A DNA stretch of 64,000 nt from Epiperipatus broadwayi (taxonomy: Eukaryota > Animalia > Onychophora): assembly GCA_028023455.1 (NCBI GenBank), contig JAQFVV010000008.1, positions 15,748,001 to 15,812,000 of the forward strand, in the 5' to 3' direction. Position 1 is the first letter of the stretch, and each line of letters starts with the position of its first letter. Below the pieces are notes generated by a model that worked only from the letters and a program-made list of their open reading frames with translations, was not told the DNA's origin and did no database searches. The translations under genes were made by a program, and so were the position numbers. Below are positions 4,623-63,909 of this stretch, piece after piece.

Positions 4623-4885
4623 AAACCACTAAATATCACATGATCACCATTTCTTATGCTTGCACATAACTGTTATTAAAACAGGCAAAACTCTCCATAC
4701 TGAAGTGCCACTCAGAGTAATCAATGGATGCCAGAAGGCTTGTGCATAAAACCCCCATCTAGTGCCTACTCATCCAATATCCCCACTCCTAGATGGGGAT
4801 TTTATGCACAAGCCTTCTGGCATCCATTGATTATTCTGGCTGGCACTGAGTGGCACTTTTATATGGAGAGTTTTGCCTGTTTTAG
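4623..4885. mobile_element. Non-autonomous Penelope-type inverted-arm insertion, hammerhead family A (short copy)
   Basis: Homologous to 63127-63909. Left arm antisense (4623-4785), right arm sense (4790-4885). 8-bp TSD TACAATTT at 4615-4622 and 4886-4893. Confidence 0.75.
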
Positions 4886-8000: not shown

Positions 8001-8104
8001 TTATCTTACCTTTTATGGAAAATATAGAAGCCTTGACAGAAATGAATATTATTCCATACCTAATTGAATTAAACACATCTGCTGCCTTTATAACCATTCC
8101 ATTT

Positions 8105-9333
8105 ACATGAATAAACATTTATTTTATAACGTCTTGCGTGCGATTATAATTACGATAGAATGACAGCCTGTTAAGCTAATTGCGCAGACGCTGTGAGAAT
8201 GTTATTAATAAATGAATACCTTCAAACAACCACATGATATAGTATTTGTATAAGAGTAAAAAAGAATCCTCTTACCCTTACGACTCAAATGTTTATATAT
8301 GAGCAAATCTAAAGTAGTTGTAACGAAGGCGTGACTACATAATAGTCACTTTAAATCACTATATATAATGTCTGTATGAATGACGCCGATGAAATTTTCT
8401 AGAATTTACTAAACGCCACTCTAAACGAAACTAAATCATATACATGAATAAACATTTATTTTATAACGTCTTGCGTGCGATTATAATTACGATAGAATGA
8501 CAGCCTGTTAAGCTAATTGTGCAGACGCTGTGAGAATGTTATTAATAAATGAATACCTTCAAACAACCACATGATATAGTATTTGTATAAGAGTAAAAAG
8601 GAATCCTCTTACCCTTACGACTCAAATGTTTATTAGCTTAACAGGCTATCATTCTATCGTAATTATAATCGCACGCAAGACGTTATAAAATAAATGTTTA
8701 TTCATGTATATGATTTAGTTTCGTTTAGAGTGGCGTTTAGTAAATTCTAGAAAATTTCATCGGCATCATTCATACAGACATTATATATAGTGATTTAAAG
8801 TGACTATTATGTAGTCACGCCTTCGTTACAACTACTTTAGATTTGCTCATATATAAACATTTGAGTCGTAAGGGTAAGAGGATTCCTTTTTACTCTTATA
8901 CAAATACTATATCATGTGGTTGTTCGAAGGTATTCATTTATTAATAACATTCTCACAGCGTCTGCGCAATTAGCTTAACAGGCTGTCATTCTATCGTAAT
9001 TATAATCGCACGCAAGACGTTATAAAATAAATGTTTATTCATGTATATGATTTAGTTTCGTTTAGAGTGGCGTTTAGTAAATTCTAGAAAATTTCATCGG
9101 CGTCATTCATACAGACATTATATATAGTGATTTAAAGTGACTATTATGTAGTCACGCCTTCGTTACAACTACTTTAGATTTGCTCATATATAAACATTTG
9201 AGTCGTAAGGGTAAGAGGATTCCTTTTTACTCTTATACAAATACTATATCATGTGGTTGTTCGAAGGTATTCATTTATTAATAACATTCTCACAGCGTCT
9301 GCGCAATTAGCTTAACAGGCTGTCATTCTATCG
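8105..9333. mobile_element. Concatemeric 337-bp-unit retroposed repeat with internal inversion (family F1)
   Basis: About 1.6 units forward (period 8105->8442), then about 2.1 units inverted (TTAGC at 8633, 8970, 9307; period 337). 14-bp TSD TAACCATTCCATTT at 8091-8104 and 9334-9347. The units differ at only a handful of sites, mostly CpG transitions. Confidence 0.85.
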
Positions 9334-9777
9334 TAACCATTCCATTTGTAACAAAAAAAAAAAATTAAAAAATTTTATATCATAAAATGTTAAGAGGCTG
9401 AATCCTTACAGTAGACCAAGGTCATTATTTTCCAAGGCTTCAGAAGAAATTCAAAATGATTAATTAGAAGGGGAAAGTAGTTATTACCTCTTCTCACAAA
9501 CTAACCTGTGCCTAAAAACAAAGCATAACAGAAGCTAAATGGTACCCAATGGTTCACCAATATTAAATTTAAGTTTTAGATATATTATATTCCTTTAGAC
9601 GGTATGTATACATAGCATATCACCTTTCTATCTTAAGTTAAAGAAATCAGCTTATTTGTCTACCACAAAAGAATAAAAACAACTAATTTCAGAGTATGGT
9701 AACAGAACTATGTATTATATGGAGAGGAATAATTATAATTAAAAAAAGGGCTGCACAAATTAAGAAGGATGAAGCTG

Positions 9778-9936
9778 ATCACATGATCACCATTTCTTAT
9801 GCTAGCACATAACTAGTCTGGGGATATTGGATGAGTAGGCACTAGATGGGGATTTTATGCACAAGCCTTCTGGCATCCATTGATTACTCTGGTTGGCACT
9901 GAGTGGCACTACTGTATGGAGAGTTTTGCCTGTGTT
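9778..9936. mobile_element. Hammerhead family A, minimal copy
   Basis: Antisense tail segment joined to the sense segment beginning ACTAGTCTGGGG and ending GCCTGTGTT. 13-bp TSD AAGGATGAAGCTG at 9765-9777 and 9937-9949. Confidence 0.8.
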
Positions 9937-10058
9937 AAGGATGAAGCTGGTTATCAAACCTAGTACTGTAATGCAAAATTTTGTTTCAATAGAGAATTTA
10001 GTTGACTAGTTCTAGTATTGATAAAAAAAAAAAGTAGTAGACATCCTTGAAAAGTTTT

Positions 10059-11214: not shown

Positions 11215-12952
11215 AAGATACTTAGTAGTTTGCCTGCCAGAAGCTTGCCATCCATTTTTTTAAAATAATCGGATTACAACACATGGTATAAACAATATGG
11301 TCGAACTCTAAGTTATTGTATTCAATAATTATGTTTTTTTTATTTCTTAAAATAATAAAAAAACACAGAAATCAAAGGACTGGAGTTCAAACAATTTTTA
11401 ATATAAATACAGTAAATAAAATTAAAAAAAAAAACAGCATTTAGTAGACTATAACAAAAGGGCAAACAGACATCACTTTTCGGATGTGCACTATCCTGTA
11501 ACTTTGAAAATATTCTACTGAAACACACAAAAATTCAAAGGGTTGTAATTAACATTTTATTAAAATGTAAAATCATTACACCAGCTGTAAAGTAATGTCA
11601 GTGCAGTCACAAACGATGCTTTGCAGTCTTATAACTGCGTTCCTTTCCAAACAGAGAGGCACTTAAAACGTGCGACATTGCATCTCCATTTGCACATTAA
11701 GTGCAATTTCATGGTCATTATGACATACTTTTTAGACAGGCAATATCCTGTAATTTTGAAAATATTCCACTGCATCTTGTTCTGTCAATGAAATATTCCA
11801 AATTTTAATCATATTTCCAAAAATGATACGGTAAAGAAGGAATGTTACAAAAATCACCATGTGTAAAACAATGTTACAAAAAAATTACGATAATTTTAGT
11901 CACAGCAGGGCAAACTATGGAAATATTCCACTGCATCTTGTTCTATTGACGGCAGATTCCAAATTGTGATCATATTTAAAAAACTGACTGAGCAAAAAAA
12001 GGAATTTAAAAAAAATCACTACAATTTTACACACGGGTTACCGAATGCTTAAAAAAAATGATAATTTTAGCGCCATGTGTTCTAAATGGAATTTATTGAA
12101 AAATATTTTTGAATTTTCTTAAAATTAACATTCAATTTGGAATTGTGAATGGAATTTATTTAAAAAATTGAAATTAGCCCTGACCATAAATTTCATTCAC
12201 AAGATAACGTCAAAATGTTAACACTCGATGAACACTTAGCATGGGGCTAACAGATAACACATAATTACAATTATCGTAATTTTTTTTTAATATTGTTTTA
12301 CATGTGGTGATTTTTTTTAACATTCCTTCTTCACTATATCATTTTTGGAAATATGATTAAAATTTGGGGAATATTTCATTGAGAGAACAAAATGCAGTGA
12401 AATATTTTCAAAATTACAGGATAGAGCCTGCCTAAAAAGTATGCAATAATGAGCAGGAAATTACACTTTATGTGTGAATGGAGATGCAATGTTGCACATG
12501 TTCTAAGTGCCTATCTGTTTGGAAAGAAACATAATTATAAGGCTCCAAAATATCATTTGTGACCGCACTGACATTAGTTTACAGCTGGTGTAGTGAATTT
12601 CCATTTTAAAAAATGTTAATTACTACTCTTGATTTTTATGTGTTTCAGAGGAATATTTTCAAAATTACAGAATAATGCACACCCGAAAAATGATGCCTGA
12701 CTGCCCTTTTGTTATATCTATTAAATGCTGTGGGGTTTTTTTTAAATTTTATACTGTATTTACATTAAAAAATTTTTGAATTACAACCCTTTGGACTTCC
12801 GTGTTTCTTTATCATTTTAAAAAAATTAAAAAAAAAACATAAATATTGAATATGATAATTTAGAGTCAGCCATATTGTAAGCCTTTGAAAATGAATTATT
12901 TTAAAAAAACCAATGGCAAGCTTCCAGCAGGCAAACTATATATAAGTATTTC
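11215..12952. mobile_element. Old fold-back / non-autonomous DNA transposon with ~680-bp inverted arms
   Basis: ~11215-11900 is reverse-complementary (diverged, with indels) to ~12270-12952, e.g. TTTGCCTGCCAGAAGCTTGCCAT vs ATGGCAAGCTTCCAGCAGGCAAA and ACACCAGCTGTAAA vs TTTACAGCTGGTGT. The spacer duplicates part of the arm. Termini are approximate. Confidence 0.7.
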
Positions 12953-19620: not shown

Positions 19621-22529
19621 ATCATTTTTATAACAACTGAAGCAGAAAAAATATGAGAGTTTTAATATTACACAATTGTCAAAAACTATTACATCTATAA
19701 TATATCTCTAATATACTCATTTATGAATAAGTTCAATAATGTCTGAAAGCAAAAATTATCAGACTATGCTAAAAGTTCATTTTAAAATCAAATCAGAAAA
19801 GAAAACAATATAGTGGAAGACTGATGTTAAAGCACAATATTGCCATTCTAATTGGACAAATAAAAACGTGCTCAGAATGTAGTTCTTTTATGAAAAAGTT
19901 GATTTGTAATAAGTTAAGTTAATTAATTCATTATTGATTCTCAAGTATGTATAAAATATAAAAGTTTAAGCTTATTCATGGAGCAAATAATTCCAAACAC
20001 ATTTTATAATAACTTCCATATCATATTTTTAAGGAATAATGCAAACCATTCCCACCTTCAGTGTGAATGCCCATTCATTGGTCAGATTTTAAAAAATAAC
20101 TACTTTTATCTGATTCCCAGTTTGTTAAATGATAAATGAAATAAGATTCAATATTTTGAAAATGTGAAATTTTTATATTATCAATCATTTTTATAATTTC
20201 ACATTGTATTAATCAAACCAGTTCACAGTTTCAAATAACAAACTAGAAGAAATTTTAATAATTTTACTAAGTTTGTAAATAAATCATAGCTATTAAATAT
20301 GTAACATTAAGAACATAAATTTATTCGTGGAACAAGAAATACCAAAAATGTAACTACAAATCACAAGTCACTTCTTAACATTAATAAACTTGTAAACAAC
20401 ACCCATTATCTTGTATTAATATTAATTCATTGGTTAAATAATATGTTGAGAGTTAATTGCTCCATGAATAAGTTTTTATATTCTCAACATTACATATTTA
20501 ATGGATATGATTTATTTATAGACTTACTAAAATTATTATAATTTCATATGGTTTGTTATTTAAAACTCTAAGTTAGTTAGCTTAATTAAAAATTACAAAA
20601 ATTGCCATTGGGCTGTTATCAGATAAAAGTTATCATTTTTCATCTGATCAACAAATTAATAATAATTTGTAACTTTACTAATGATTCTTTAAGAATCTGA
20701 CTTGTAAATGGTTGCAGGAATATAATCGGAGTTACTTGCTCCATAAATAAGTTTGTATATGCTCAGTGTTACATATTTAAAATAATTGTAATTTATTTAG
20801 GGACTTGTTAAAACTTATAATATATACACAAAAAGATTGCAATTCAACATTAAATGTTTATCTCCAAAATGTCAACAGAAAAACAATTATGAAGTGGTTA
20901 TTCTTATGTTATTTATACTGTAATTTCTGAAAAAAAAATATACAAAAAAAAACAAAAACATAACTTTTATTATGAATTTTCTGCCATATATACATTTCAA
21001 TTTTTTTTTATAATAATCAATCAAATGCAATTAAGTAATGATTTTTTTTTTTAATTTTTAAAGGAATATTCACTAATAAATTAAACAATAAGTATAGACA
21101 AACTTTTTTAAACATTTCACGGATAAATTTTACGTAGCAACAATTTATGAAATATATAAAAATTATGTAATTTTTATTACTCCCAATTTCTGGCACAATA
21201 GCAATGTAAAATATTTTCACATTCATGTAAATACAGTAATAAATTTACATTATTCATTTTAATTTTTATTTTTTTAAGAAATATTTATTAATAAGTTACA
21301 TTTAAATCATGCTAATATATTATGATTAATTTTAAGCACGTTCATATTTTATCAGCATAGGTAGACCCCTACGCTTTGAAAATATTTATTGTCATGAAAG
21401 CATGTCCAATTAATAAGCCAGTATGTATGAAGAATAGTTCCTTTCATAATATTTCATTATAATTATATATATTGTAACCTTCCGCTTAGCTAGATAGAGA
21501 CAGATGTGGATAGGAAGTGCCAGAGAGATGCATTTGTAATAATGTATTCACCAGGGCGCCAAATTGTAACTATATCCATCAGCTGCTGTGCCAACTCAAG
21601 ATCATCATCACTTGACAAATTGTAAGTCCATGAGGAAAGCAAGTTTTCAAAATTTTTCAAAAAAAAAATTATAATAATAATTTAAGTTATAAATAGTATG
21701 TTTAGTTCTCATTTTGAATCCCATAATTATTAAATAAATGAATTAATTTGACAAATTATTGAAATCTGAAAACAACTCTCCACCACAGACTCAAGTCATA
21801 CAAACTCAACACAGCTATATGATCCCTCATGGCAGCTACAACAATTCCAGTTCTCTATTTCTTATGTTTAGATTGGTGTGAATGGATTGGTAATCCATGT
21901 AGAACCTCAAGAATCAGGCTCACAAGAAATATTAAAAGTTTTACTACCCACATAAAAGAAGAGAAGTCTTAACTCACCCCCCCCCCCCAACATATTAATT
22001 ATCTCTTTAGTCTCCACATAAACCACCTTCCAAAGTTACAATTAATTTCTTTTAAATGTTTATGTTTTTCCCCATCATATCTCTACCACAAATATTGCTC
22101 TCCACAATGCCATCTCTCTCACATGCATACAGGAGTGGAATGTACAATATTCTGAACTCAATAACTCTTCATTGTGATAGTATAACCGCAATGATAACGT
22201 CATCATTTAAAAGTTTCTGATTGTAAAACCTCTTGTTCTCAGGGTCCTGATTTATAGTGTGGAGTTAGAACTAATCACTTCCAAATTTATTGCAGACCAT
22301 TGAACACTATCCCAACGAATTTAACTCGAATAGACATACACTCATTTTAGAAGCTAAAATCTACTCTCAACTAAGGATAATAATCCTAATCATAATACTA
22401 ATAATAATAAACATTAGAAACTACTAAACAGTAAAAACAGTGAGGATTGCCAATTCCTCTACAAGCTTTATGATAAATGCTTAGCCAGAGCCAGCACTTA
22501 AAATATCTCTGTCAGGAACTCCTCCCCAA

Positions 22530-22573
22530 ACCCCTAACCCATGGTTTCGTGCTTTGGCACTCCTCAGAAAGGT
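22530..22573 (-). ncRNA. Type-I hammerhead ribozyme (family B, host-sense copy)
   Basis: Minus strand reads accttt CTGAGGA GTGC-CAAA-GCAC GAAA CC-ATG-GG TT^ aggggt. Core complete, perfect helix II, 3-bp helix III, GUU site, helix I with two G-U pairs. Confidence 0.7.
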
Positions 22574-22900
22574 GGTTCAGACATTAGATATAAAAATACC
22601 AACCCAAAGCCAAGCACTTATCTAAAAGTTATCTATTGAGTGGAAAATCTGAAATTTTCAGACATCTACATGTCTTCAAACCCAGCTATCCAACCCAAAT
22701 AGCTATATGGGGCTGATAGATTTTCAGCCATACCCCGCTGAAGATCTATCAGCCCCATATAGCTATTTGAGTTGGATAGCTGGGTTTGATGACATGTAGA
22801 TGTCTGAAAATTTCAGATTTTCCACTCAATAGATAACTTTTAGATAATTGCTTGGCTTTGGGTTGGTATTTTTAGATCTAGTGTCTGAACCTACCCTGAC

Positions 22901-22943
22901 ACCTCTCTGAGGAGAGCCAAAGCACGAAACCATGGTCAGGGGT
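22901..22943 (+). ncRNA. Type-I hammerhead ribozyme (family B, plus copy)
   Basis: acctct CTGAGGA GAGC-CAAA-GCAC GAAA C-CATG-G TC^ aggggt. Canonical core and GUC site (cleavage after 22937), palindromic ACCATGGT helix III, one helix-II mismatch. Confidence 0.8.
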
Positions 22944-23807
22944 TTGGGGAGGGGTTCCTGTCAGAGATATTTTAAGTGCTGGCTCTGGCTAAGCATTTAT
23001 CATAAAGCTTGTAGAGGAATTGGCAATCCTCATTGTTTATAACTTACAAGCTTAAGAGATAGAGTCATGTGATCCACGACTTATTTTGACTACTAAACGG
23101 TTACTTAAATGAAATATTTGTTTATAATAAATTTTGACTAGAATCTTAGCGACTAGGAAGGTATAGTGCAATAAACTTAACAAATTAAATATTAAATTTA
23201 AAATTAAATTATTCTATTAGATGTTTGCCATATGATCATCATAATTTCAAATATGAGTAAATATTTCAGCAAATTAATTCTCAAATCTCCACAAACAAAA
23301 AAAATATATATATATTAATTTAATAGCAATATTTAATAAAGATATTTTGTGACACATCTGCACTGGAAAACATGGAATATTTTCTATAACTTTTCTATAT
23401 ATCGGATTTCTGGAATCAATGAATACCCAAGCATTAAGACACAACACCAAAGTATAAATTCAAAACAAAATATTTATTAACATATTAACGATAAATACTA
23501 CAATATAAAACACAAACATCATAGCGATCCAAACAGGAAAAGAAAATAATGAAATAATAATTACAAAATATATCTATAATAGATCTACACTGGCTACGGA
23601 TTACAAATTCTTTCCGGGTTCATCCCATCTTGGATAGAACCCTCGTCCCAACATTGGTACTCATATTCTAGTACTGGGGACAAATAACTCATATTATAGA
23701 CTATTCAATAAGCTGTTTTGACCCATGATATATTAATTTTAAAATGCCAATTATTTTCTTCTCTGAAGCAGCACTTCATCAATACTAATATTACAATAAA
23801 TATAATT

Positions 23808-24837
23808 GAGATATTTATTTTATATAGCATGATGTTTATGAATTGTAATAAACTAAAGATCAGCTTTTCAAGCTAATTCACATGCGCTTTAGGAATCTTA
23901 TTAAAAAATAAATACTTTCACTTCCAACACAAGATAAAGTCTTTGCGAAAGAATAGAATGAATCCACCTATTCTTTCAACCCAAATACTTAAGTATGGGC
24001 AAATCTTAAGCACTGGAAAGCGTGAAGATAAAGCAATCACTTTAAATTACTTTTTACTATGTCTGAATGAATGACGCCATCGAAATTTTCTAGAATTTAC
24101 AATACGTCATTCTTAAATGAAACTAAACATATGTAAATGAGACCTTTCTTTTATATAGCGCGATGTTTATGAATTGTAATAAACTAAAGATCAGCTTTTC
24201 AAGCTAATTCACATGCGCTTATGAATCTTATTGATAAATGAATACTTTCACTTCCAACACAAGATAAAGTTTCATTTAAGAATGATGTATAGTAAATTCT
24301 ACAAAATTTTGCTGGCATCATTCATTCAGACATTGTAAAAAGTAATTTAAAGTGATTTGTTTATCTTCACGCTTTCATTTCCAGTGCTTAAGATTTGCCC
24401 ATATTTAAGCATTTGGGTTGAAAGAATAGGTGGATTCAATCTATTCTTTCGCAAAGACTTTATCTTGTGTTAGAAGTGAAAGTATTCATTTATTAATAAG
24501 ATTCATAAAGCGCATGTGAATTAGCTTGAAAAGCCGATTTTTAGTTTATTACAATTCATAAACATCATGCTATATAAAATAAATGTCTCATTTACATATG
24601 TTTAGTTTCATTTAAGAATGACATATCGTAAATTCTACAAAATAATTGGTTTATCTTCACACTTTCATTTCCAGTGCTTAAGATTTGCCCATACTTAAGC
24701 ATTTGGGTTGAAAAAATAGGTGGATTCATTCTATTCTTTTGCAAAGACTTTATCTTGTGTTGGAAGCGAAAGTATTCATTTATTAATAAGATTCATAAAG
24801 CACATGTGAATTAGCTAGAAAAACTGATCTTTAGTTT
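23808..24837. mobile_element. Concatemeric ~336-bp-unit retroposed repeat with internal inversion (family F2, homologous to F1)
   Basis: About 1.4 units forward (23808-24270), then inverted units (period 336, 24269->24605; the second has a ~50-bp deletion). 13-bp TSD AATAAATATAATT at 23795-23807 and 24838-24850. Collinear with F1 over the whole unit. Confidence 0.8.
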
Positions 24838-27080
24838 AATAAATATAATTATTATTGGAACAATTAGCTTTAGCTTTTAGCCCTTATCAAATTAAATCAA
24901 TATTTCATTCCCTCCACTAAAATATTCACATATATTATAAATTACTCTAATTTGGTATTTAAACTTATAACTAATTTTACAAGCTATTACTCCCTATAAA
25001 CTTAATGCTTAACTTCTATTTTATAATTGTATAATAATTTAAGAAGTTACAACATTCTGCACACACACTTGTATTGCATACTAGAGCCCCAATATGAGTT
25101 TCTCTACCACTATTTTACCAGTCCAGGGGTGACTTGCTTTAATATGAACTAGATGTGGTGCACATTGCTTGTCCAGGTTCAAATTATTAACCTTAAATTT
25201 GGAATAATTATCGGTTCAATAACAAGCTATGATCTAAGCTCAGTTATACTATACATCAATTTCTAGAAATATGTTTTTACTTATAATTCCCTAACGCAAA
25301 TATTGTGTTCATTTTGCCTTGAAATCATATATAAATGATGAAATAGATGTTACATTATTTAAATTCAAGTATACAAAATATCTTTTCAGCATGAATCAGC
25401 TATTTACTTAAATGATACTTTGGTTATCAATTTAGTTATTATGTAAAATTGATCAACATTGTTGATGAAAGAATTTAGTTACAATTTAATAAGTATGATT
25501 AATTAGATTTTTGTGAGATATAGAATTAAGTTTTTTCCTTTGTTATAATATGAATTATCTACCTATTACTTGCAAGATATTGACAAAAAGAAATCATCAA
25601 GAATTGGTTTTTTAATAGGTGGAAAACAAAATATTTTTTTATTTATTACAACTAATAATAATTTTATTATTAGAATAACATATCATTTGTTTTTTCAAAT
25701 TGTTCAAAAGCATATTTATTATTTTAATGATAGAATCCATCCATCTTATTGCCAGTTGTCCTCTATTCTTTTCCAAGCATTTTCCAACAAATATACTAAT
25801 ATACAAATTTGTATGCAGATCAGGCTTAAATAAATTTCTTTCTATAATTATTAGCTTTACTAACTGTATTAATTATAATACAAAACATAATCAAATTATG
25901 ATTATATAATAACTAGCTACAAACTTATAACTATATACTTTGAAGCTCCTATGAACTTTCTATTTTGATAAAAAATAAAACTAAGATTTTTTTTCATTTC
26001 TTTTCAACACAATTGATGCCATGGATTTACACCTTTCACACATTGAAATTGTATTGTGATTGTAATAATATCATCAAAGATTGCCATTTAAATACTAACA
26101 ATAGTAAAAGCATTATCATCAGCTTTAAATATATATTGTAAAGAGTACAAATGAATAGGGATAATATGGAGGAATGACAATTATTATCATCCCTACTGAA
26201 AAATCACAATAATCTCAATTAACAGTAACAACAAATGGTCATCAACAAATATAAAAAGAGCCGGGGAGAATTGGTATAAAGTAAAATAAATAGTTATACA
26301 ACTATGAGTTACATTACCAATACTAAACATGAATAATGAACAGTCATCCCTTGTGACTGAATTTAAGAGAGATTTAATGCCAACATGTAAATTATCTAGT
26401 CAATTCAGACTTATGACATACTGTAACTGTTGGAATTTCACAGTCTACATGCAAATTACCCGAGGGCAATTCACATGTGCATTACACATTCTGAATCACA
26501 GAATACCAACTTTTCTTTTACAGCCTGCTAAGGTCAGGGAGAAACAAGAAACTCATAAAACTGTCAAAAATAACAAGACAACATTATTTATTCATGTATA
26601 TACAACACAACACATACACTGGCATGACTTTAGTTAATTAGTTCATAAATAAACTTAAGGTAAATAAACCTTTCCAATTTTTTTTTTAATTTTGATTATG
26701 CTCACATATGGTACACGGTGGTATATTAATTCAATACTTTAAAATGTCCTATTTTATACTATTAATGTTAAGTATTTGAATTGATTCTAATCTATTGCAT
26801 AGACACCTAAGTGCTCTCAACTAATATCACCGCTGTCCTAATACTAATTGATAAAGCATATAAATTAAGGCTAGTCTTACTACTGTCTGTTGTGATCAAT
26901 TACAGGTTATGATAGTAGTATGCAATAAATAATAAAATATAATCAGAGATTCACATCTGTATTACAATAGTTATATAAGAATAAATACATGTGGTAATTG
27001 TATGCCTGTGGTAGGAATTAACCTTCTACTGCATGTAGAGCATACAGTGACGGGTAGTCGCATAGTATCACTATGACATA

Positions 27081-28279: not shown

Positions 28280-28790
28280 GAGAGAAGAAATGAGAGTTGT
28301 ACAGGGCCAAAAACAGGACTTCAGGAGCAGTTATAAGAGTCGCAAAACAAGCAAGCAGATCAGATCCAAATAGCACTTGGATAGGGTAGATGACAGACAA
28401 AATAAAAATGAAGAATGGAAAACATTATATCCATTCCATAAGACTGATAGGAGATTTTTCAAATCATCTCGAATGAGGATATCAATAATTCTAAAGGAAT
28501 ATCTGGAGGAAAATCAAATATAGTCTTCGTACAAATAAGGATGGCCTTCTATATTTTAACAACCATGGATCTGCTTTCCAGATAAATGATTTCCAAAAAT
28601 GCTGAATTGCCTAAATAAACACATCATTTGGAAAATAGCTAATGATGCAAATATTGAAAGTGACCACCCAAAAATAGAAATCAAGATATTTACCAGCTTG
28701 CTATTAAAAAAATGTTTTACAAAAGTGATTAATCACCAAAAGATGAATATTAAAAGTGTAAATAATAAACTACTCCAAAGATTATGATGC
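28280..28790 (+). pseudogene. Possible decayed non-LTR RT fragment
   Basis: Frame-broken similarity to early RT motifs (..FRTNK..; DFQK...LNKHIIWKI). Cut on the right by the Gypsy insertion. Weak. Confidence 0.3.
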
Positions 28791-28794
28791 CAAC

Positions 28795-31700
28795 TGTTAT
28801 ATCTTCCAGTTATAATACTCACTGGCGAACAATCTATGCAGTAAGCTAATCCTTGCCCTGACTATATATGCATACAATAATTTTATCACAAAGACTAACG
28901 CCGGTGGAATAAGAAAAACAGATTTAATTATAATACACTAATATATACATATTTACAGTGATACATTAAAACAATCATAATCTATTTATATTAACAAACC
29001 CGAAGCGACCTACTTTATAGTCCCTATTCTGACTCTTGGACGTTCGGAGGCCAGCTGTCCGCTCTGGGGCTACCGTGCTAAATAAGTGACATTCAGCACC
29101 TTTCCCAGTTCATCTGCATCGGTAGAGCTCCCAATTTTTAGTGTCAAATGCTTTACACTTTCACTCATTTTTTCAGTCCTGATTTTCTGGATTTGATTGG
29201 TCAAATCTTGTCCGTCCTGGTCGGATCAATCCCTCCCAGTTTTCCTTTTGGCTTAAGTTTTACTTTGATTGATTACCCTTTGCAGTTCGATTGCTTTTTA
29301 ATTAATCATCTTGTTTGTCTGCAAAGTTCCTTTGTTAATTAACCTTCCTATCTAAAAGGATATGTTTACATGTTGTTTTAAAAAATAACACAGCTATTAA
29401 AGTATAATATTATTTTAAATTAACGAAGTATTTTTATCTTCATGTATAAATATAACTTACGTATGAATATGCGATACATTATACACATACATACGTTTAA
29501 ATATTAAATACCTATTTACAACATTTACTATTATTATTCTGTGTGTATGTGTATTTTAATTATACACATACATAACAATACTTCCCCCAAGTTTGAAGAT
29601 TATTTGTTAGTCTTCGAACTTAAAATATAATCATTTAAATATTTGGGAGAGTTTATTTTCCTTTTTAGTCATTGCCGTGAATTATTTTCCATTTGTAGAG
29701 ATGATTTCTCTGAAGGCAAAATGTTTAATTGAAAATCAGTTTCTCGAGTGGCGCAAATTTCTGGTTTATTACCATTTTTTAGAGTCTCGTCGGTTTCTGT
29801 TGTGCAGAGATTTGGAATCCAGTCATCACTTTCATTTCTCCGTAGCTGGTTCACATGTTTTTTTAGTATCTTACCATCGCCCATGCAAACTGTCACGACT
29901 TGTTTTGACAGATGGCGAATAACGACCCCTGGAAACCATCGATTTTTTAGTGTGTTCTTTACCCACACTCTCTCTTGCGGCTGGAATTTATACAAACAAC
30001 TCTGTTGTTTGTCTCATTGTTTTGTTGGCACTATTTTTGCAAGTTTTGTTCGCAGTTTTCTGCCTAAATATATTTCCGCTGGTGATTTGCCAGATTTGGC
30101 CACTGGGGTAGAATGCTGGTGCAGAAGAGCAGTCAATACAGCTTTGTCGATTTTCATTTCACCCATTTTTTTTATAGCTGACTTGAGGCTTTGCATTGCT
30201 CTTTCAGTCAGTCCATTTGATTGGGGGTGGGAGGGAGTACATGTTTTATTCCCCAATCTTGCATGGCCTCTGCGAACTTTTCCGATGTGAAACTTGTTCC
30301 ATTATCTGAGATTAAAGTTTCTGGGAATCCGTGATGAACAAAAATCTCATACAGAGTGCTAACTGTTACCTCTATGCTGGTATTTTTCATTGTTTTATAC
30401 TCAGCCCACCCTGAATACGAGTCGACTACAACTAGAAATAAATGGCCTTCGAATGGACCACAGTGGTCTATATGGATTCGTTGCCATGGGTTGTCTGCCT
30501 TTGGCCATGTTTCAAAAGTCGATAGGGGTGCTTTAGCGCACTGTTGGCAGTTCTCACATTTCTTTATATATCTTTCTATATCTACATTGATGTTTGGTCA
30601 CCATATGATGCTACGAGCTAGGGCTTTTGCCCTCACAATGTCCGGATGTCCTTCATGAAACAATTTTAATATTTGTTGTCTCCCCACCACAGGTACCAGC
30701 ACTTGGTCGCTCCTCAAAATGCATCCTTTACATATGGATAGCTGTTCGCGGGCGTTCCATAATCGTTTGTGGAGAAAACTTGGGCATTTGTTCGGCCATC
30801 TTCCTCTTATCTTATTTATTATCCACTGATAGCCGTCATCTTCTTCTGTCCATCAAGCTACAATTTTGCTATTTAAGTTTTGCTTTTGAAGTTCTCTTTC
30901 TAATACTGCTGTTTCATCAAGATCGGTCATGCGTGATAACGCGTCTGCGTGTCCAATTTGTTTTCCCTTTTTGTATTGCAAACTGTAATCATAGCCTGCA
31001 AGAATGTTAAGCCAACATAACAATCGGGGGCTTAAATGATCAGGTGTATGTTTATTTCCGAATATTCCCAGCAGTGGTTTGTGATCAGTTATATTAGTAA
31101 ATTTCCTCCCATATAGATATTGGTGGAATTTTTTCACTCTGAACAAAAATTGTGAGCGCTTCCTTGTCCAATTGGCTATAGTTTTTTCTGCCTTGGACCA
31201 TGTGCGTGAAGCATATGCTATAGGTCGCTCTTCCGACTGGGCTGGATGACTTAGTACTGCCCCGACCCCAAATTCAGATGCGTCGGTGGTCAACATAATT
31301 TCCAGATCAGTTATAGTGTACTAATAATTTCTCTGAAGTAAGCAGCACTTTAGTGCGAATAAACACTGTTTCATCTTGCCCATCCCATTTCCATTTCTGG
31401 TTTTTTCCTCAGTAGATTATATAAAAAAGTGGCCACATGGGCTTTTCATTTTAAAAAAGATTCAAAAAATTCACCAAGCCTAGGAAAGCTTGTAGTTGCT
31501 TCACGTTTGTGGGTCTTGCTGCTTCTGCTACTGATTTAGCCTTTTCGGGGGAAGGGGATGTGCCGCTTCTCGATATAATGTGGCCCAGGAATTTAATTTC
31601 CTTAGTTTTCCAAATGCACTTTCCAGTATTCAGCTTTGCACCAAACTCATTTAACCATTCACATATCTTATCTACTCAGTTTCTAAGTTCTTTGTCTGTG

Positions 31701-34388
31701 GTCGCTGTTACAAGGATGTCGTCAAAATATGGTATGACGCCATCTAATCCATTGAGGAGAGTTTCGATTTTCGACTGAAATATGCTAGGGGCCGATGTTA
31801 TTCCGAATGGTAGTCTTTTACATTTGTATAGCCCAAGATGCGTAGTAATTGTCAGTATTCTGGACGCTTCCTCTGTAACTGGTATTTGATGGAATGTAGC
31901 GTTAAGGTCTAACTTCGCAAAGAAATTAGATTTTTGCAATGAAGCGATAACTTCTCTAGCAATTGGTACAGGGTATGCACTCTTGTTTAATGCTTTATTT
32001 ACAGTTACCCTATAATACCCACATAAGCGTATCTGACCATTAGGTTTAGTTACAATTACTACTGCAGTGGCCCAATCTGACTTTTTCGTGGGTTCCAACA
32101 CCCCTTTCTTGACGAGGTCATCAATTTCTTTTTCTACTTTTACTTTCTGAGCGAACGATACCTTTCTATGTTTGTAAATTATGGGTAGAGCTGATGTGTT
32201 CATTTCTAATGATACCGGCTCAGTTTTAATAATTCCCGGCTCCCCATTAAATAAATTTGGAATTTTATTTTCCATTTCTTTTTCCAACTCAACATTTTGT
32301 AAGAATGTCAATCTAATCCCTAATTTATTAAACCACTCATGGCCGATTAATGGACTTATCGGGGCATGTACTATATATAATGGTAAATTGACAATTTTAC
32401 CCTCTACTCTATTTACTGGAGCATTAACCATGCCCTTTATTTTAATAGCATTGCCATTTACGTCTAACACTTTCATGTCAGTTTTTACTATTTCGGGTTT
32501 TTGCTTACAATTTTCTGTAATGGTCTGCCAATCGCGTAGTGAAATTAGGGTTATACCGCTCCCACTGTCCACTTCCATGTCTATAGGGCGATCGTATATT
32601 TTAACTTTTATAATTATTTTCTCATTAAGACTGGTTGCTGTACTGTTAATCATTGTAAACTGTTTTTCTTTTCCCTGTAATTTATGGTTAGGACTGTTTC
32701 TTGTGTGTAGTGTTTCATTTTGGTCTCTCCAACACGTTTTGCCTATACCCTTTCTTATTACATAATTTACATTGTTCGTGTCTAAAATAGAACGCCTTTT
32801 TTTTCCACAACAAAAACAGATAACAGGGTTTCTATTATTACTGCCATTACTTTCATTATTTTCTGTGGATTTCTGTTCCACTGTTTTGAAAGTTTTGTAA
32901 ACTTCGTTCTGCTTATTCCCCCCATTATTGAATTCTGCGTATTTTTTGGACTGTTCCAAGACGAGCTCGTAGGCTTCGCTACGTTTGACTGCCTCCATGT
33001 AATCGAGATTCGTTACTGACAGTAGCTGTTGCCATAAGATGTTGCTGTTTATGCCTGTCAGGAACTGTTCAAGGAGAGCTTCATCTAAGTAAAAACCATA
33101 CACGAAGTCTTTAGCAAACACTCACAGTGCACAATCAAAATCCTTAATCGTTTCATTTCTAGCTTGCAGACGATGGCGGAACTGTAGTCTAGCAACGTAA
33201 CGTGAAGGAGTGGGGTTAAAATAATTACCCAATTGCTCTTTGAAGTCACTGTATGAGCATTGCTCGGGGGTTAAAGGCGCTACTAACCGATTTGCGATTT
33301 CTATAACCGCTTTACCTGCGAAACATAATACGGCGGCTATTTTATACTTATCATCTTCGACTCTATTAATAAAAAGATACTTTTCTATGTGTTCACCATA
33401 CTTTCGGCCAACTGCTCATCTCGTTTATGTCAAATTTGCCAATGGCCATATGCAATTTATCCATTATACCCAAATATTGTACTTAAAAAATTTCTGCTTT
33501 GTGTAAATGGTGAATATCAGCAATTTTAATACACACTACTCTAGCTTTACCAGGTTCGAACTCTTGACTGCGCAAAATGTTATATCCGCCAGTTATAATA
33601 CTTACTGGGGAACAATCTATGCAGTAAGCTAACCCTTGCCCTGACTATATATGCATACAATAATTTTATCACAAAGACTAACGCCGGTGAAATAAGAAAA
33701 ACAGATTTAATTATAATACACTAATACATACATACTTACAGTAATACATTAAAACAATCATAATCTATTTATATTAACAAACCCGAAGATATACAAAAAC
33801 AATAATGAAGATCTATGCGACCTACTTTATAGTCCCATGCTGACTCTTGGACGTTCGGAGGCCAGCTGAAGGCTCTGGGGCTACCGTGCTAAATAAGTGA
33901 TGTTCAGCGCCTTTCCCAGTTCATCTGCATCGGTAGAGCTCCCAGTTTTTAGTGTCAAATGCTTTACACTTTCACTCATTTTTTCAGTCCTGATTTTCTG
34001 GATTTGATTGGTCAAATCTTGTCCGTCCTGGTCGGATCAATCCCTCCCAGTTTACCTTTTGGCTTAAGTTTTACTTTGATTGATTACCCTTTGCAGTTCG
34101 ATTGCTTTTTAATTAATCATTTTGTTTGTCTGCAAAGTTCCTTCGTTAATTAACCTTCCTATCTAAAAGGATTTGTTTACATGTTGTTTTAAAAAATAAC
34201 ACAGCTATTAAAGTATAATATTATTTTAAATTAACGAAGTATTTTTATGTTCACATATATATATAACTTACATATGTATATGCGATACATTATACACATA
34301 CATATGTTTAAATATTAAATCCCTATTTACAACATTTACTATTATTATTTTGTGTGTATGTGTATTTTAATTATACACATACATAACA
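28795..34388 (-). mobile_element. Full-length Ty3/Gypsy LTR retrotransposon (Mag-like single gag-pol architecture), inactivated
   Basis: LTRs 28795-29577 and 33578-34388 (TG...CA; 9 mismatches in the first ~210 bp plus a 29-bp indel). 5-bp TSD CCAAC at 28790-28794 and 34389-34393. PBS-like at 33551-33575; PPT TTGGGGGAAG next to 29578. Domain order gag-CCHC-PR-RT-RH-INT. Confidence 0.95.
29669..33464 (-). pseudogene. gag-pol of the 28795-34388 element (frameshifts and stops)
   Basis: ATG at 33464. Motifs: PR MEVDSGSG, RT PYFDDIL, RNase H TTDASEFGVGAVL and TDHKPL, integrase HIDHCGP / SDNGTSF / SNGLTERA, and a C-terminal SH3-like KFQPQERVWVKN...HVNQLR. Broken by a +1 shift near 33400, a TGA near 33125 and further lesions. 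Confidence 0.92.
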
Positions 34389-54900: not shown

Positions 54901-55703
54901 CTGGACCAGAAAATTTTACTTCTATTAAAATGCATTAAAAAATTATTTTTGGATTTCTAAAGTTGTTATCAATGAATGAATCAGGAAATCACAATCATTT
55001 ACTTGCTAATGATATATATTTTTACTGAAAGAATTTAATTACTTATCTCTAGAGATTTTAATTAATTGTTCTTTTCAGCTACTTAGAAAATAATATTTTC
55101 TGATCACATAAACTTTTATATTTTTAGTTATTCATCATCCTATTACAATTAACCATTTTATGTATATGTATTTAAACATATACACACATACATAACAGAT
55201 ACACAATAAACAAAGGAACTTTCTGTACTTTTGTAATTATTTAGCAATACCGTAAAACCAATTTTTAACACAGTACTTATCTATTATTCACACATCCATT
55301 TTAACATTTAAAGACCTAAAAAGTTCATTCTTACATCCCATTTGCTGTTCAATAAAAAAAAAAGACATAGTACATTTTATTGTTTAATGTTCCTAAAGAT
55401 GGAGAACTTCACAGAAATAAAAACCTATTCACATCTCAGATATGAATTGTGAATATACTTAAAGTAAAAATATTTTTGATGATGAACTAATGACTGATAA
55501 TAAATCAAGTGCTATCATAGTACTTGCTCAAAAGGAGGTCAATAGAGCTAAGATTAAGCTCAAGTTATAGATCTCTTTTTATTTGTATAACAAATATAAC
55601 TCTCATAGATAAGTTTAAATATTACAATACAAATCTCAAAAGAAGATTATATTATATAATGAGAGTGCCAATAGCTCTTAATAAGCTTTTCCGAATATTC
55701 CTA

Positions 55704-55746
55704 TCTTCAGACCGGTTTGTAGCTGTTAGCTTTCATCAGTGAGATA
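55704..55746 (-). ncRNA. Degenerate hammerhead (family C, minus copy)
   Basis: atctca CTGATGA A-AGC-TAACA-GCT-A CAAA C-CG-G TC tgaagat. G12 changed to C; palindromic ACCGGT helix III. Confidence 0.6.
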
Positions 55747-55923
55747 CTAGGATATTCAGGCATTAGATTTAAAAATACCAGGTCAAGCCCAGCTTTATCT
55801 AATACTTAACTATTAAGTAAAAAATCTGAAATATTCAGAAATCCATATATCTTCAAATCCAGCTATTTAACAAATACACCATATATTAATAGCTTAAGCA
55901 ATAGAACAGCAACAAAGCCTAGC

Positions 55924-55965
55924 ACCTCACTGACAAAAGCTAACTGCTAGAAACCAGTCTGAAGA
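55924..55965 (+). ncRNA. Degenerate hammerhead (family C, plus copy)
   Basis: cctca CTGACAA A-AGC-TAACT-GCT-A GAAA C-CA-G TC tgaaga. G8 changed to A. The consensus of the two C copies is a complete core. Confidence 0.6.
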
Positions 55966-57597
55966 TAGGGATATTCAGAAAAGTTTGTTAAGAGCTATTG
56001 GCACACTCATTATACAACTTTTGTAATACAAGCTTATTAAAACTAAGTCACTTGATGAATGACTTTATTTCATTGCAATTATAGTTTTGCTTTTGAAGCT
56101 TTGGTGATGTTATATCGTTAAAGCTATTAATATATGGTGTATCTGAATTTAGTTTAGTCCCATAAGGCTATTTAAGTTAGATAGTTGGATTTGAAGATAT
56201 ATGTATGTCTGAAAAATTTCAGATTTTCTTCTTAATTGTTAACTATTAGATAAATGCTGGGCTTGACCTGGTATTTTTAAATCTAATTCCTGAATATGAC
56301 TTGATTTCCTTGCAAAACTCAAAAAAAAAGACTTCAGTAAAGACTGCTTGCACAATATTACTTTATTTAAAAGCATGCCAAAATGAATTTCAAACAAATT
56401 TTGTTATCTATTTATTGTAGAAGCTGTCATTTTCAAATATAGTTTTATTATAAGAACCATAAAATGGCACCTGAATACTGATCCAATTACATGATACATA
56501 AAAGTAACTTATGAAATAATATACAACAATTAAGCATACATGACACCAGATATTCTGACATTAGTTTCCATGGAATAAATATATTAAAAATAAATGTCAA
56601 TTACTGTTTATTTTTAAAATTTTACTTATGCAAGTGTGGTTAAAAAAAATTTAATAGAAAATATTATGACAAAATTGTCTTTTATATAAAAATGCATATA
56701 CAGGAATTGGCCAATGAAATCATCAAAGTTTACTAACACAACAGCAAATTTATATAATAAATATGTCAGGGTTAAAATGAAGACATTTGAATGGGTCACA
56801 GAAATATAATGCCTTCACCCCTAAATTTTTCAGAGGAGTATAACAGAACATACAATCCGGTATATAAACACAAACGAAGACAAGAAATTTAGATAAATAT
56901 ATGGAACTTGGCTACACAGCTAAAAACAATTATTAAACAGTTGTGATGCAAATAGCTCTAACAGCTTGAGACACGTATATACAACTTCTTCTGGTAAACA
57001 AAAATGTAACAAGTGCACGATGGTTTTTCATTCGCAGTTTTTATATCCCTCTGTGTTCTTTTGTTTAAGTCTTATCTGCTACAGTTCTCCAAATTCTTTA
57101 TCGCATGTTTTCCAAAACCCTGCTTTTGATTGTTCTTAACTTTTAATCTCCGCGGCTTTGTTTGGAATTATAATTATTTCTATTATAATTATTTAACTTT
57201 AATTAGTTATTTTTATCTGTAATAAAAATAAATATCCACAGCTTGTTTAATTATTTCCGTTATAATTATTTAACTTTAATTAGTTATTTTTATCTTTAAT
57301 AAAAATAAATCTCTGCAGTTTTGTTTGGAATTATAATTATTTCCATTATAATTTTTTGATTTTATATTAGTTATTTTTATTTCCAAATAAAATAAGAGAA
57401 AACTTCTGGAGTAAATTGTTCCTCGAAACTTCGCTATTTATTTCTCAGCAAATGAATACAACACTTCCTCCCTCACTCCAAAAGTTAGAGTTTATTTATG
57501 TTACACATAATCATCCATTCTGCACAGTTTTCTTTTATCCCATACGAGTCTGGGCGGTTTCTCTTTTTCAGCTTGAAGAAACACTTGATTTTTCCGA

Positions 57598-60996: not shown

Positions 60997-62084
60997 CTAT
61001 TAAATAAAATAATTAAAAAAAAACTTAAGTGCAATCAAAAAAACATTTTACAAATAGATAATATAAATATAAACAAGTTTATAAATTAGCAACAAAACTA
61101 AAAATTGGACAAATATTAACTAATTCCCTTTTATTTGTTCACTCAATGATAAAATAGTCATTTAAAAAGTTTCAAACTGCTTAGTGATAAGATGTCTATT
61201 TTATAAGATGCTTATTTAATAAGACAAATATTACAATGAAAAGTAATTACATATATCAATAAGGAGGATATAAATATCAGTGAATAAAATTCTAAGTTAA
61301 GAACAGGCCTATTGAATGTTAAAACAAAACTTATCAAACTAAAATAAATAGCTTTAAATAACCAAGATTAAAATAATTTTTTAAGACTTTTTTATTTGAA
61401 GAAAAAAGAAACAAGCAATTGGAATATAACTAATAAATTATCATGTATAGTATACCATTGTGGCCTGAGTTTAAATTTGGAATCATTATATTTATAAAAA
61501 AAAAAAAATTGTTAGCTTATTTTATTTTAATTCTAAATTAATTTAAAATAATCAAATAGTTTAGACAACACATTCTAATGTAAAATGGTATATGTATTTT
61601 CTAAAAAAACTTGGTGTATCAAAATTATCTCACAGCAAAAAATTTGAAAATATTTTATTCTTAGATGATATAATAAATTTAATAATGAGTATATATATTA
61701 TGTTAGGAATATATTAACAGGGATATATAAATGATTTTATATAATAGTAATAATAATGTAAAGTACTTATTAAAGAATTCACTTGTTGACATTTTATTTA
61801 CTGCATACATTTGAAAAATAAATATGTAAACATAAACAAACAAAACACTAAATTATTATTAAAGTATGTGTATGCATGTGTTAGTATGATTAGGCAATAC
61901 TGAATTATATGTATTTAAAAACATTGTTTTAAAATATTTAATTCATTTAAAATGGGTATTTAAAAAAATATGTTGATTATAGTATATAAAATAAATAAAT
62001 AAATGAATATCTATATTTTATTTAAGATATGATTTTATATGGTTATTAAATTTTTTTTTGATTTGTAAATATATAGATATATAT

Positions 62085-62180
62085 TTACATTATCTTAGAA
62101 CGTATTACATTCAAATATTAGCCTTTCAAGCTAATTGTGCATACGCTTTGCGAGTGTTAATAATAAATAATTACTTTGTA
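62085..62180 (+). repeat. Fragment of a third diverged member of the F1/F2 337-bp family
   Basis: TTAGCCTTTCAAGCTAATTGTGCATACGCTTTGCGAGTGTTAATAATAAATAATTACTTT aligns with F1 CAGCCTGTTAAGCTAATTGCGCAGACGCTGTGAGAATGTTATTAATAAATGAATACCTT. Confidence 0.55.
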
Positions 62181-63126: not shown

Positions 63127-63909
63127 AGCCAATAAATATCACATGATCATCATTTCTTATGCCTGCTTATAACTGTTACTAAAACAGGCAAAACTCTCCA
63201 TTTAGTAATGCCACTCAGTGCAAGCCAGAGTAATCAATGGATGCCAGAAAGCTTGTGCATAAAATCCCCATCTAGTGCCTACTCATCTAACATCCCCAGA
63301 CTAGTTTCTGTCTTGTGGCCTTTGTCAGTGAGGAGCCTTGAATCTGAGAGCAATGTGCCTACTCCAGCAGCCATCTTTTATCTCTACTTAACTACAAAAC
63401 TGAGTCTTAAATTGAAAACCCAATAATATTTTCAATCCAAGCTCATTAGCCTATATAGTCATATAGGTCTGAAATCATAAAAAATGATGATCATGTGATG
63501 TTTATTGGCTTAAAACCAATCCTACCTAATAGGATAATAGTGGCTATGGTTATTAAAAAATCAAAGACACCAAAATTTATTGGTACTGAACTGAGTTCAG
63601 ACCTATATGACTATATAAGCTAATGAGCTTTGATTAAAAATATTATTGTGTTTTCAATTTAGACTCATAGTTTTGTAGTTAAGTAGAGATAAAAGATGAC
63701 TGCTGGAGGTTGCATTAGATCATAAGATCTAGGTGCAGTGCTCTCAGATCCAAGGCTCCTCACTGACGAAGGCCACAAGCCAGAAACTAGTCTGCGGATG
63801 TTGGATGTGTAGGCACTAGATGGAGATTTTATGCACAAGCCTTCTGGCATAAATTGATTACTCTGGCTTGCACTGAGTGGCAATACTGTATGGAGAGTTT
63901 TGCCTGTTT
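63127..63909. mobile_element. Penelope-type inverted-arm insertion, hammerhead family A (longest copy)
   Basis: Antisense arm 63180-63473 with a ~55-nt tail to its left, sense arm 63596-63909. An inverted copy of the tail end lies at 63483-63513. 13-bp TSD TAATATTAATTTA at 63114-63126 and 63910-63922. Confidence 0.85.
63755..63800 (+). ncRNA. Type-I minimal hammerhead ribozyme (family A)
   Basis: tcctca CTGACGA A-GGC-CACAA-GCC-A GAAA C-TA-G TC^ tgcgga (cleavage after 63792), palindromic ACTAGT helix III. The mirror copy at ~63292-63334 (minus) has CTGACAA and a helix-II mismatch. Confidence 0.75.

Follow-up and report, generated by a model that had tools for sequence, protein, structure and literature searches.

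An abundant ~336-nt non-coding repeat of Epiperipatus broadwayi with Penelope-type insertion anatomy and no recognisable hammerhead

Positions 23808 to 24837 of the window, the whole 64-kb stretch of Epiperipatus broadwayi DNA analysed here, are occupied by copies of a short repeat (F2) that resembles a second repeat at another locus of the window (F1). An earlier note, made from the letters alone, had proposed that F1 and F2 belong to a structured, non-coding mobile RNA family, in which selection maintains RNA structure, unit size and a precise processing or priming site. The locus thus raises the question of what kind of element F2 is, which strand carries its functional RNA, and what the common end point represents.

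Anatomy, relatives and mobility of the insertion

F2 is a single insertion of a very abundant, non-coding repeat of ~336 nt (Table 1). On reading of the sequence, the whole of 23808-24837 is one insertion and both limits are exact insertion ends, each flanked by the 13-mer AATAAATATAATT. The borders proposed earlier therefore hold to the base, and every coordinate and motif quoted with them was located in the sequence. ATT terminates both strands of the duplication, as at an AT-rich target of the type used by Penelope-like elements (PLEs). In the '+' orientation of the earlier note, the left arm runs from unit position 1 through one 331-nt unit and ~130 nt of a second. The right arm, mapped by k-mers on the element's own unit, terminates at unit position 42-43. 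The outer ends read GAGAT... on one side and ...TTTAGTTT on the other, and no poly(A), A-run or simple repeat was found at either outer end of F2 or F1.

Table 1. Positions of the features discussed in the text, numbered from the first letter of the window.
Feature	Position	Strand	Description and basis
Left target-site duplication copy	23795..23807	none	13-bp AATAAATATAATT, ends in ATT
F2 left arm	23808..24270	minus (probable RNA sense)	1.4 units, starts at L; k-mer self-map and alignments
F2 tail within left arm	23808-23849		42 nt by which the left arm outreaches the right
F2 inner junction	24268..24270	none	3-nt microhomology AGT; sequence reading
F2 right arm	24271..24837	plus (probable RNA sense)	1.7 inverted units, ends at S
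Right target-site duplication copy	24838..24850	none	identical 13-mer; complement also ends in ATT
Small hairpin AGCUU-N3-AAGCU	23862..23874	-	predicted; permuted alifold and single folds
Two adjacent central hairpins (stems of the earlier note)	23947..23999	-	predicted within a long-range helix; RNAalifold
Central hairpin copies	24398-24450	+	F2 right arm
Long hairpin HP1	24069..24112	-	conserved apex AAAUU-CUAGAA-AAUUU; MFE folds of both families
HP1, second copy	24280-24323	+	F2 right arm
F1 sister insertion	8105..9336	none	F2-like architecture, young; 13-bp duplication AACCATTCCATTT at 8092-8104 / 9335-9347
Third relative, decayed fragment	62061..62177	+	covers tail, S site and ~75 nt beyond
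Rep-A hammerhead insertion	63127-63909		13-bp duplication
Rep-A hammerhead insertion	4624-4885		one long and one short end
Rep-A hammerhead insertion	9780-9937		12-13-bp duplication
Insertion of second hammerhead family	22431-23088		650-nt fold-back insertion, 10-12-bp duplication

The unit length of 336-337 nt given for both families holds for F1, the units of which are 337 nt long, but the only complete unit of F2 has 331 nt owing to a 5-nt deletion. A second F2 unit would be ~336 nt long if complete, and the third, the outer unit of the right arm, bears a 46-nt deletion after 24638. With 331-337 nt, the tandem, non-coding units are within the 170-400-nt range of retrozyme-type repeats. No stop-free stretch longer than 65 aa and no notable open reading frame was found in the repeat family.

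F1 consists of 1.6 units followed by 2.1 inverted units. The units are 99.1-99.7 % alike within F1 and 92-94 % within F2, and F2 is therefore the older insertion. F2 is collinear with F1 yet diverged, as had been described, with 70-74 % identity over 241-323 aligned nt. The block said to be well conserved contains a 19-mer identical in F1 and F2. With up to 3 mismatches allowed, this 19-mer matches five times in the window, where 0.26 matches would be expected. The relative reported at ~62.1 kb is genuine, but it is a fragment only, in which 74 nt align at 76-77 % to F1, or ~117 nt (62061-62177) at 72 % to F2. A profile scan of the 64-kb window detected no family members beyond F1 and F2. The conserved 19-mer also retrieved 12 metagenome contigs, none of which (0/12) was a family member by nhmmer, the matches being due to chance, and no viral contigs.

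Mobility and abundance were analysed by comparison of public contigs over 23600-25050; all runs consist of contigs, in which direction is unreadable. Alignment to this interval was found for 9,881 contigs of one DNA run. The summed word depth, which is not a copy number and is taken only as "thousands of contigs", was 1e5-1e6 on the element versus 4e2-1.7e3 on the flanks, and its steps coincide with the bins that hold the insertion ends of F2. An empty site was found in one contig with paralogous flanks (~88-90 % identical), in which 23806 is joined to 24870 and the 13-mer AATAAATATAATT occurs once; a paralogue of the F2 flanks sought inside the window was not found. The contigs also contain numerous, differing 'skip' and 'opposite strand' joints, and the inner junctions therefore vary among copies. 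The 13-bp duplication, the empty site, the thousands of copies and the covariation above controls described below all support the proposal of a structured, non-coding mobile RNA family.

The flanks of F2 (23600-23807 and 24851-25050) are themselves moderately repeated, their depth comparing with ~30-50 for single contigs, and F2 was therefore inserted into another repeat. Runs X6 and X7, labelled as a second organism (B), contain a third of the 31-mers of F1 and few of those of F2. Either the two species labels overlap, or a close relative shares the young F1 subfamily in nearly unchanged form.

Two fixed outer ends

The outer ends of F1 and F2 fall at two common unit positions 42-48 nt apart, the short end S, at which the right arm terminates, and the long end L, at which the left arm starts. 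The tail beyond the right-arm end (42 nt in F2, 44-48 nt in F1) is present in the left arm only. A right end 11 nt from the conserved CAGC had been claimed for both families. This distance is correct for F2. In F1 it is 12-14 nt, since the element end and the target duplication have 1-2 bases in common, and the site is the same within 1-3 nt. The left ends coincide within ~3-6 alignment columns and form a second common end point, absent from the earlier description. The inner junctions differ, unit position 191 being joined to 75 in F1 versus alignment columns ~106 to 296 in F2.

The fixed ends are common to F1, F2 and the DNA contigs of the family. Divergence just upstream of the long-end position was found in 17 contigs. 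In 16 DNA contigs a boundary falls exactly at S (24547), with the tail on the retained side and a polarity opposite to that of an outer end. This opposite-polarity boundary probably reflects arms that consist of the tail only and have various partners, such as the arm at 9780-9812.

The window is AT-rich (~27 % G+C) and full of repeats; a tRNA search of the window detected none. Four of its insertions bear hammerheads, and in each of them one arm ends at a short site, the other reaches ~50 nt further out and the hammerhead points toward the outer end. Three belong to the family Rep-A, with the core CTGACGA...GAAACTAGTC, a palindromic ACTAGT helix III and duplications of 12-13 bp where legible; the long arm of the Rep-A insertion 9780-9937 is a tail-only piece of ~33 nt (9780-9812). 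The insertion of the second family has CTGAGGA...GAAACCATGGTC once per arm, pointing outward, and the duplication ACTACTAAAC at 22420-22429 and 23089-23098; its short end is on the left and its long end on the right, unlike in the other five insertions. These families resemble F1 and F2 in the 10-13-bp duplication, the inverted arms and the combination of one S end with one L end. Unlike F1 and F2, they bear minimal type I hammerheads, the helix III loops of which are palindromic (ACTAGT, CCATGG), and comparison by eye found no sequence similarity in the S/L regions. All six insertions of the window (F1, F2 and the four hammerhead-bearing ones) combine one S end with one L end, for which the probability is ~0.016 if each end chose independently.

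Further inverted-repeat structures, nested or simple, lie at 11450-12716, 1393-1870 and 55652-56017, the last of which (55.7-56.0 kb) has CTGAAGA...GAAAAG motifs in both arms. They could be additional fold-back insertions of this class.

Fixed ends of this kind have a precedent in PLEs. In vitro, both strands of the DNA are nicked and then extended by a purified PLE protein, with a cut preference after 5'-ATT-3'; reverse transcription begins at two adjacent internal RNA sites, the interval between which is the genomic tail, and hammerhead mutants leave insertion unaffected (PMC11167929). In genomes, PLEs are marked by partially tandem copies beside an inverted, 5'-truncated one and by a tail of 30-40 bp that only one end carries, and the hammerhead-less Naiads are known as very successful (PMC8557442). 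Both F2 and F1 show the partial tandem with an adjacent inverted truncated copy and a tail of 30-50 nt at one end only, and the pairing of S with L in six of six insertions agrees with the one-ended tail of the literature. By its anatomy, F2 would thus be the product of a twin-primed PLE-type integration, and the fixed end is best read as one of two PLE reverse-transcription start sites 42-48 nt apart. As for the "processing or priming site" of the earlier note, the site is indeed precise and fixed and the priming reading is favoured; nothing indicates self-cleavage. Priming, not self-cleavage, is therefore the most likely role of the common end point.

An autonomous PLE (RT plus GIY-YIG) was absent from the window, the RT ORFs of which belong to LTR elements. 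An LTR retrotransposon lies at 28789-34133, with protease, RT and RNase H ORFs on the minus strand and LTRs (28789-29322 and 33572-34133) that are ~95 % identical. RT and integrase fragments were also found at 44.8-48.9 kb.

The same anatomy bears on two other explanations. One is that F2 moved or arose at the DNA level, as a foldback/MITE-type DNA transposon, a Helitron derivative or a local satellite with palindromic rearrangement. Its long inverted arms of tandem units look foldback-like, and no poly(A) tail is present; foldback (FB-type) DNA transposons likewise have long inverted arms built of tandem subrepeats. FB transposons, however, have symmetric termini, move by cut-and-paste and leave ~9-bp duplications, whereas the termini of F2 are offset by 42-48 nt and are not mutually inverted copies. 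The inner junction is arbitrary and different in each insertion, the 13-bp duplication matches no common cut-and-paste superfamily, and the architecture is common to the hammerhead-bearing RNA elements of the window. Helitrons leave no duplication, and the 5'-TC...CTRR-3' ends of a Helitron are not those of F2. The dispersal of thousands of copies, like the empty site, is at variance with a local satellite. An origin at the DNA level is thus very improbable.

The other explanation is a SINE-like element moved by the reverse transcriptase of a LINE (non-LTR) element and inverted by classical twin priming. Twin-primed target-primed reverse transcription can yield both inverted arms and 7-20-bp duplications. 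F2, however, has no poly(A) or microsatellite 3' tail, its arms begin at two fixed internal start sites instead of a 3'-terminal start, and Pol III A/B boxes were not recognised by eye. Tandem multimeric arms and a one-sided tail, moreover, are traits of PLEs and not of LINEs. We give this explanation very little credence.

Predicted RNA structure, covariation and sense

Six minus-sense units from two independent lineages, F1 and F2, were used as input for RNAalifold. The program predicted 55 pairs, 97 % of them canonical and 10 of the 55 compensatory, with both sides changed. When the 3' partners were slid by 1-3 columns as a control, 38-46 % of the pairs were canonical and 0-2 were compensatory. 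Five of the compensatory pairs (147/164, 169/198, 174/193, 177/190 and 179/188) lie in the two central hairpins (columns 145-166 and 168-199), and five more in the enclosing helix (columns 119-135/216-232). Circularity was avoided by projecting the MFE structure of F1 alone onto F2. In the minus sense, 12 of the 14 doubly substituted pairs are canonical in F2 and two are not; the null expectation is 3.65 canonical pairs, and none of 2000 permutations reached 12. In the slid controls of this projection, at most five pairs were kept versus six broken (5/11). With the plus-sense structure of F1 the signal was weaker or absent. Judged from these predicted structures and the two lineages available, the covariation between F1 and F2 is real, with its strongest signal on the complement of the orientation used in the earlier note.

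Two of the three stems that had been said to covary are compensatory by RNAalifold as well (CTCA/TGAG versus CCCA/TGGG, and TAAGAG/CTCTTA versus GAAAGAATAG/CTATTCTTTC). The third, AATGACG/CGTCATT versus AATGATG/CATCATT within F2, did not hold up, since it amounts to two CpG-type transitions (CG->TG, CG->CA). On the sequence, this stem appears to be weak evidence, explained by CpG decay. Within F2, nine of the 30 variable columns are CpG-type, and single changes broke predicted pairs 15 times and kept them 7 times. The F2 copies are therefore decaying, as expected of inserted DNA.

In target-primed reverse transcription, the 3' region of the RNA of an element abuts the target, a rule to which the hammerhead families of the window conform. 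The RNA sense of F1 and F2 would therefore be the complement of the orientation in which the repeat was first read. Folding is asymmetric in the same direction. Against dinucleotide shuffles, the minus-sense fold has z = -3.5 (F1) and -3.8 (F2), and the fold of the opposite strand z = -1.2 (F1) and -2.7 (F2). From the geometry and the folding asymmetry, the functional RNA is most likely this complement.

The long predicted hairpin over the conserved block, HP1, begins ~10 nt beyond L and sits 10-70 nt 3' of L in the RNA sense. Its apical 19-mer is identical in F1 and F2. In the predicted folds of F1 it closes only through G-U pairs, which are possible on the minus-sense strand alone, and a subfamily seen in the contigs retains the apical stem with an altered loop. 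In the Anolis system, activity requires RNA that continues past the start sites, on their 3' side, for some tens of nucleotides (PMC11167929). HP1 is therefore proposed as a candidate reverse-transcriptase or protein-binding element. The predicted small hairpin lies 12-13 nt 5' of S in the RNA sense, inside a G+C-rich helix that would enclose S and most of the tail. This helix is CGUCU/AGACG versus GCAUG/CAUGC in the two families, an equivalence that holds only with the register shifted by 1 nt. Together with HP1, the structured domain around S is proposed to provide the protein-recognition and start-site elements.

The palindromic loop TTCTAGAA was also considered as a helix III for dimerisation. 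This candidate was rejected, as the contig subfamily has a non-palindromic loop on a stem that is kept.

The family also occurs in two RNA-labelled runs, which consist of directionless contigs and contain 0.36 of the sampled words for F1 and 0.04-0.07 for F2. The element-to-flank ratio in these runs is no higher than in the DNA run. Depth in the RNA-labelled runs peaks at the HP1 block (24041-24089 and 24335-24383), and in the DNA run at the central hairpins (23943-23991 and 24384-24432), the two profiles differing ~20-fold. Other transcribed elements may contain HP1 too, or HP1 may give rise to a stable RNA fragment.

Ribozyme search, template and known systems

At gathering thresholds, Rfam detected no ribozyme and no Rfam gene in the whole window. 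At E <= 10, F1 and F2 gave only chance miRNA- or snoRNA-like matches and no ribozyme family; Rfam also misses a minimal hammerhead used as control (63763-63798, at 63.76 kb). Because Rfam overlooks this control, a regular-expression scan for the core was added. NUGANNA followed by GAAA within 45 nt was not found on either strand of F1 or F2, nor was the CUGANGA...GAAA core including 3:8 covariants, and the control hammerhead was recovered in the same scan. Over the whole window, the CUGANGA core was matched in other families only. A possible A3:U8 hammerhead variant, ATGAATGA...GAAA, was rejected, since G replaces A9 and no helix II is common to F1 and F2; the motif furthermore sits on the strand opposite to the probable RNA. 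The type I hammerhead per unit that defines retrozymes is thus absent from F1 and F2, a family that otherwise works like a retrozyme.

It could be supposed that F2 is nevertheless a true retrozyme-type circular-RNA element with a self-cleaving and ligating motif hidden in the conserved block or in the S/L region. In that case RNA processing would set the fixed ends, and rolling-circle reverse transcription of a circle would produce the concatemers. A circular template could explain arms of up to 2.1 tandem units; the predicted RNA is highly self-paired with conserved helices, a strongly conserved block adjoins L, and 16 DNA contigs are bounded exactly at S with opposite polarity. Tail-only arms such as 9780-9812, however, probably account for this boundary. 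No hammerhead core was found on either strand in scans that detected the control, and no Rfam ribozyme at E <= 10, although Rfam missed the minimal hammerhead control too. The hammerhead families of the window have their cleavage site ~120-170 nt upstream of the S and L ends, so that these ends are not cleavage sites there, which is further against reading the ends of F2 as processing sites. We consider a hidden motif of this kind unlikely.

The explanation that we find probable is that F2 is a non-autonomous, PLE-dependent retroelement, mobilised in trans and retrozyme-like without a ribozyme. F1 and F2 are then a new family of an already known kind of element, the non-autonomous Penelope-mobilised repeat. 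Within this explanation, we infer which enzyme acts, which RNA sense is used and what HP1 does. The template would be a multimeric or circular RNA, complementary in sense to the orientation of the earlier note, that folds into the conserved helices and is bound by a PLE protein (reverse transcriptase/GIY-YIG endonuclease). The endonuclease would introduce two nicks 13 bp apart, one in each strand of an AT-rich target and each following ATT, and each 3'-OH would prime cDNA at S or L, fixed internal RNA sites 42-48 nt apart. Priming at S and L would give two outward-in arms with a tail at one end only. The two cDNAs would be joined at an arbitrary inner point via 2-3 nt of microhomology, and gap repair would generate the 13-bp duplication.

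A multimeric or circular template is needed for arms of more than two units, such as the right arm of F1. Since such arms occur without a recognisable ribozyme, it is conceivable, if doubtful, that the family makes its template by an undescribed route. Such a route may be a new self-cleaving or ligating RNA motif, for which the invariant HP1 block and the structured S/L domain are candidates. It may also be obligatory template jumping, by which the PLE reverse transcriptase would connect the RNA 5' end with the internal start site. If true, either route would amount to a retrozyme life cycle that runs in nature without a ribozyme.

Among known systems, the metazoan non-LTR retrozymes likewise consist of non-coding units of 170-400 nt arranged in tandem. 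They are low in G+C, fold into strongly self-paired RNA, are present in many copies with duplications of >4 bp, and co-exist with, and are probably mobilised by, PLEs (Cervera & de la Pena 2020, PMC7229834; Li, Clavereau & Pollet 2026, preprint, 10.64898/2026.07.22.740005). F1 and F2 differ from them in lacking the defining type I hammerhead, and are known here from DNA and contigs instead of monomer RNAs. The second comparison is with PLEs, especially the hammerhead-less Naiad/Chlamys elements and their non-autonomous derivatives such as MRC1 (Craig et al. 2021, PMC8557442). These elements and the Anolis Poseidon (Frangieh et al. 2024, PMC11167929) share with F2 the partial tandems and the inverted 5'-truncated copy. 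PLEs also share with it the 30-50-nt one-ended tail, the two internal start sites and ATT nicking in AT-rich DNA, and the hammerhead-less PLEs resemble F1 and F2 in proliferating without a hammerhead. Autonomous PLEs differ in that F1 and F2 have no ORF and a unit of only ~336 nt, and the likeness described here is one of anatomy. The published examples of non-autonomous hammerhead-less PLEs that we found are from green algae.

The family is an in-vivo counterpart of the in-vitro findings on PLEs, in which two internal starts are used on both strands and the hammerhead is dispensable. It adds a short, ribozyme-less RNA family with the PLE signature at thousands of copies, beside hammerhead families in one genome. 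The pair F1/F2 offers a compact, covarying RNA structure for the mutational definition of recognition by the PLE protein. For annotation, it means that hammerhead-based searches will overlook retrozyme-like concatemers of this kind. The main interest of the family is that it is a natural ribozyme-less counterpart of the animal retrozymes.
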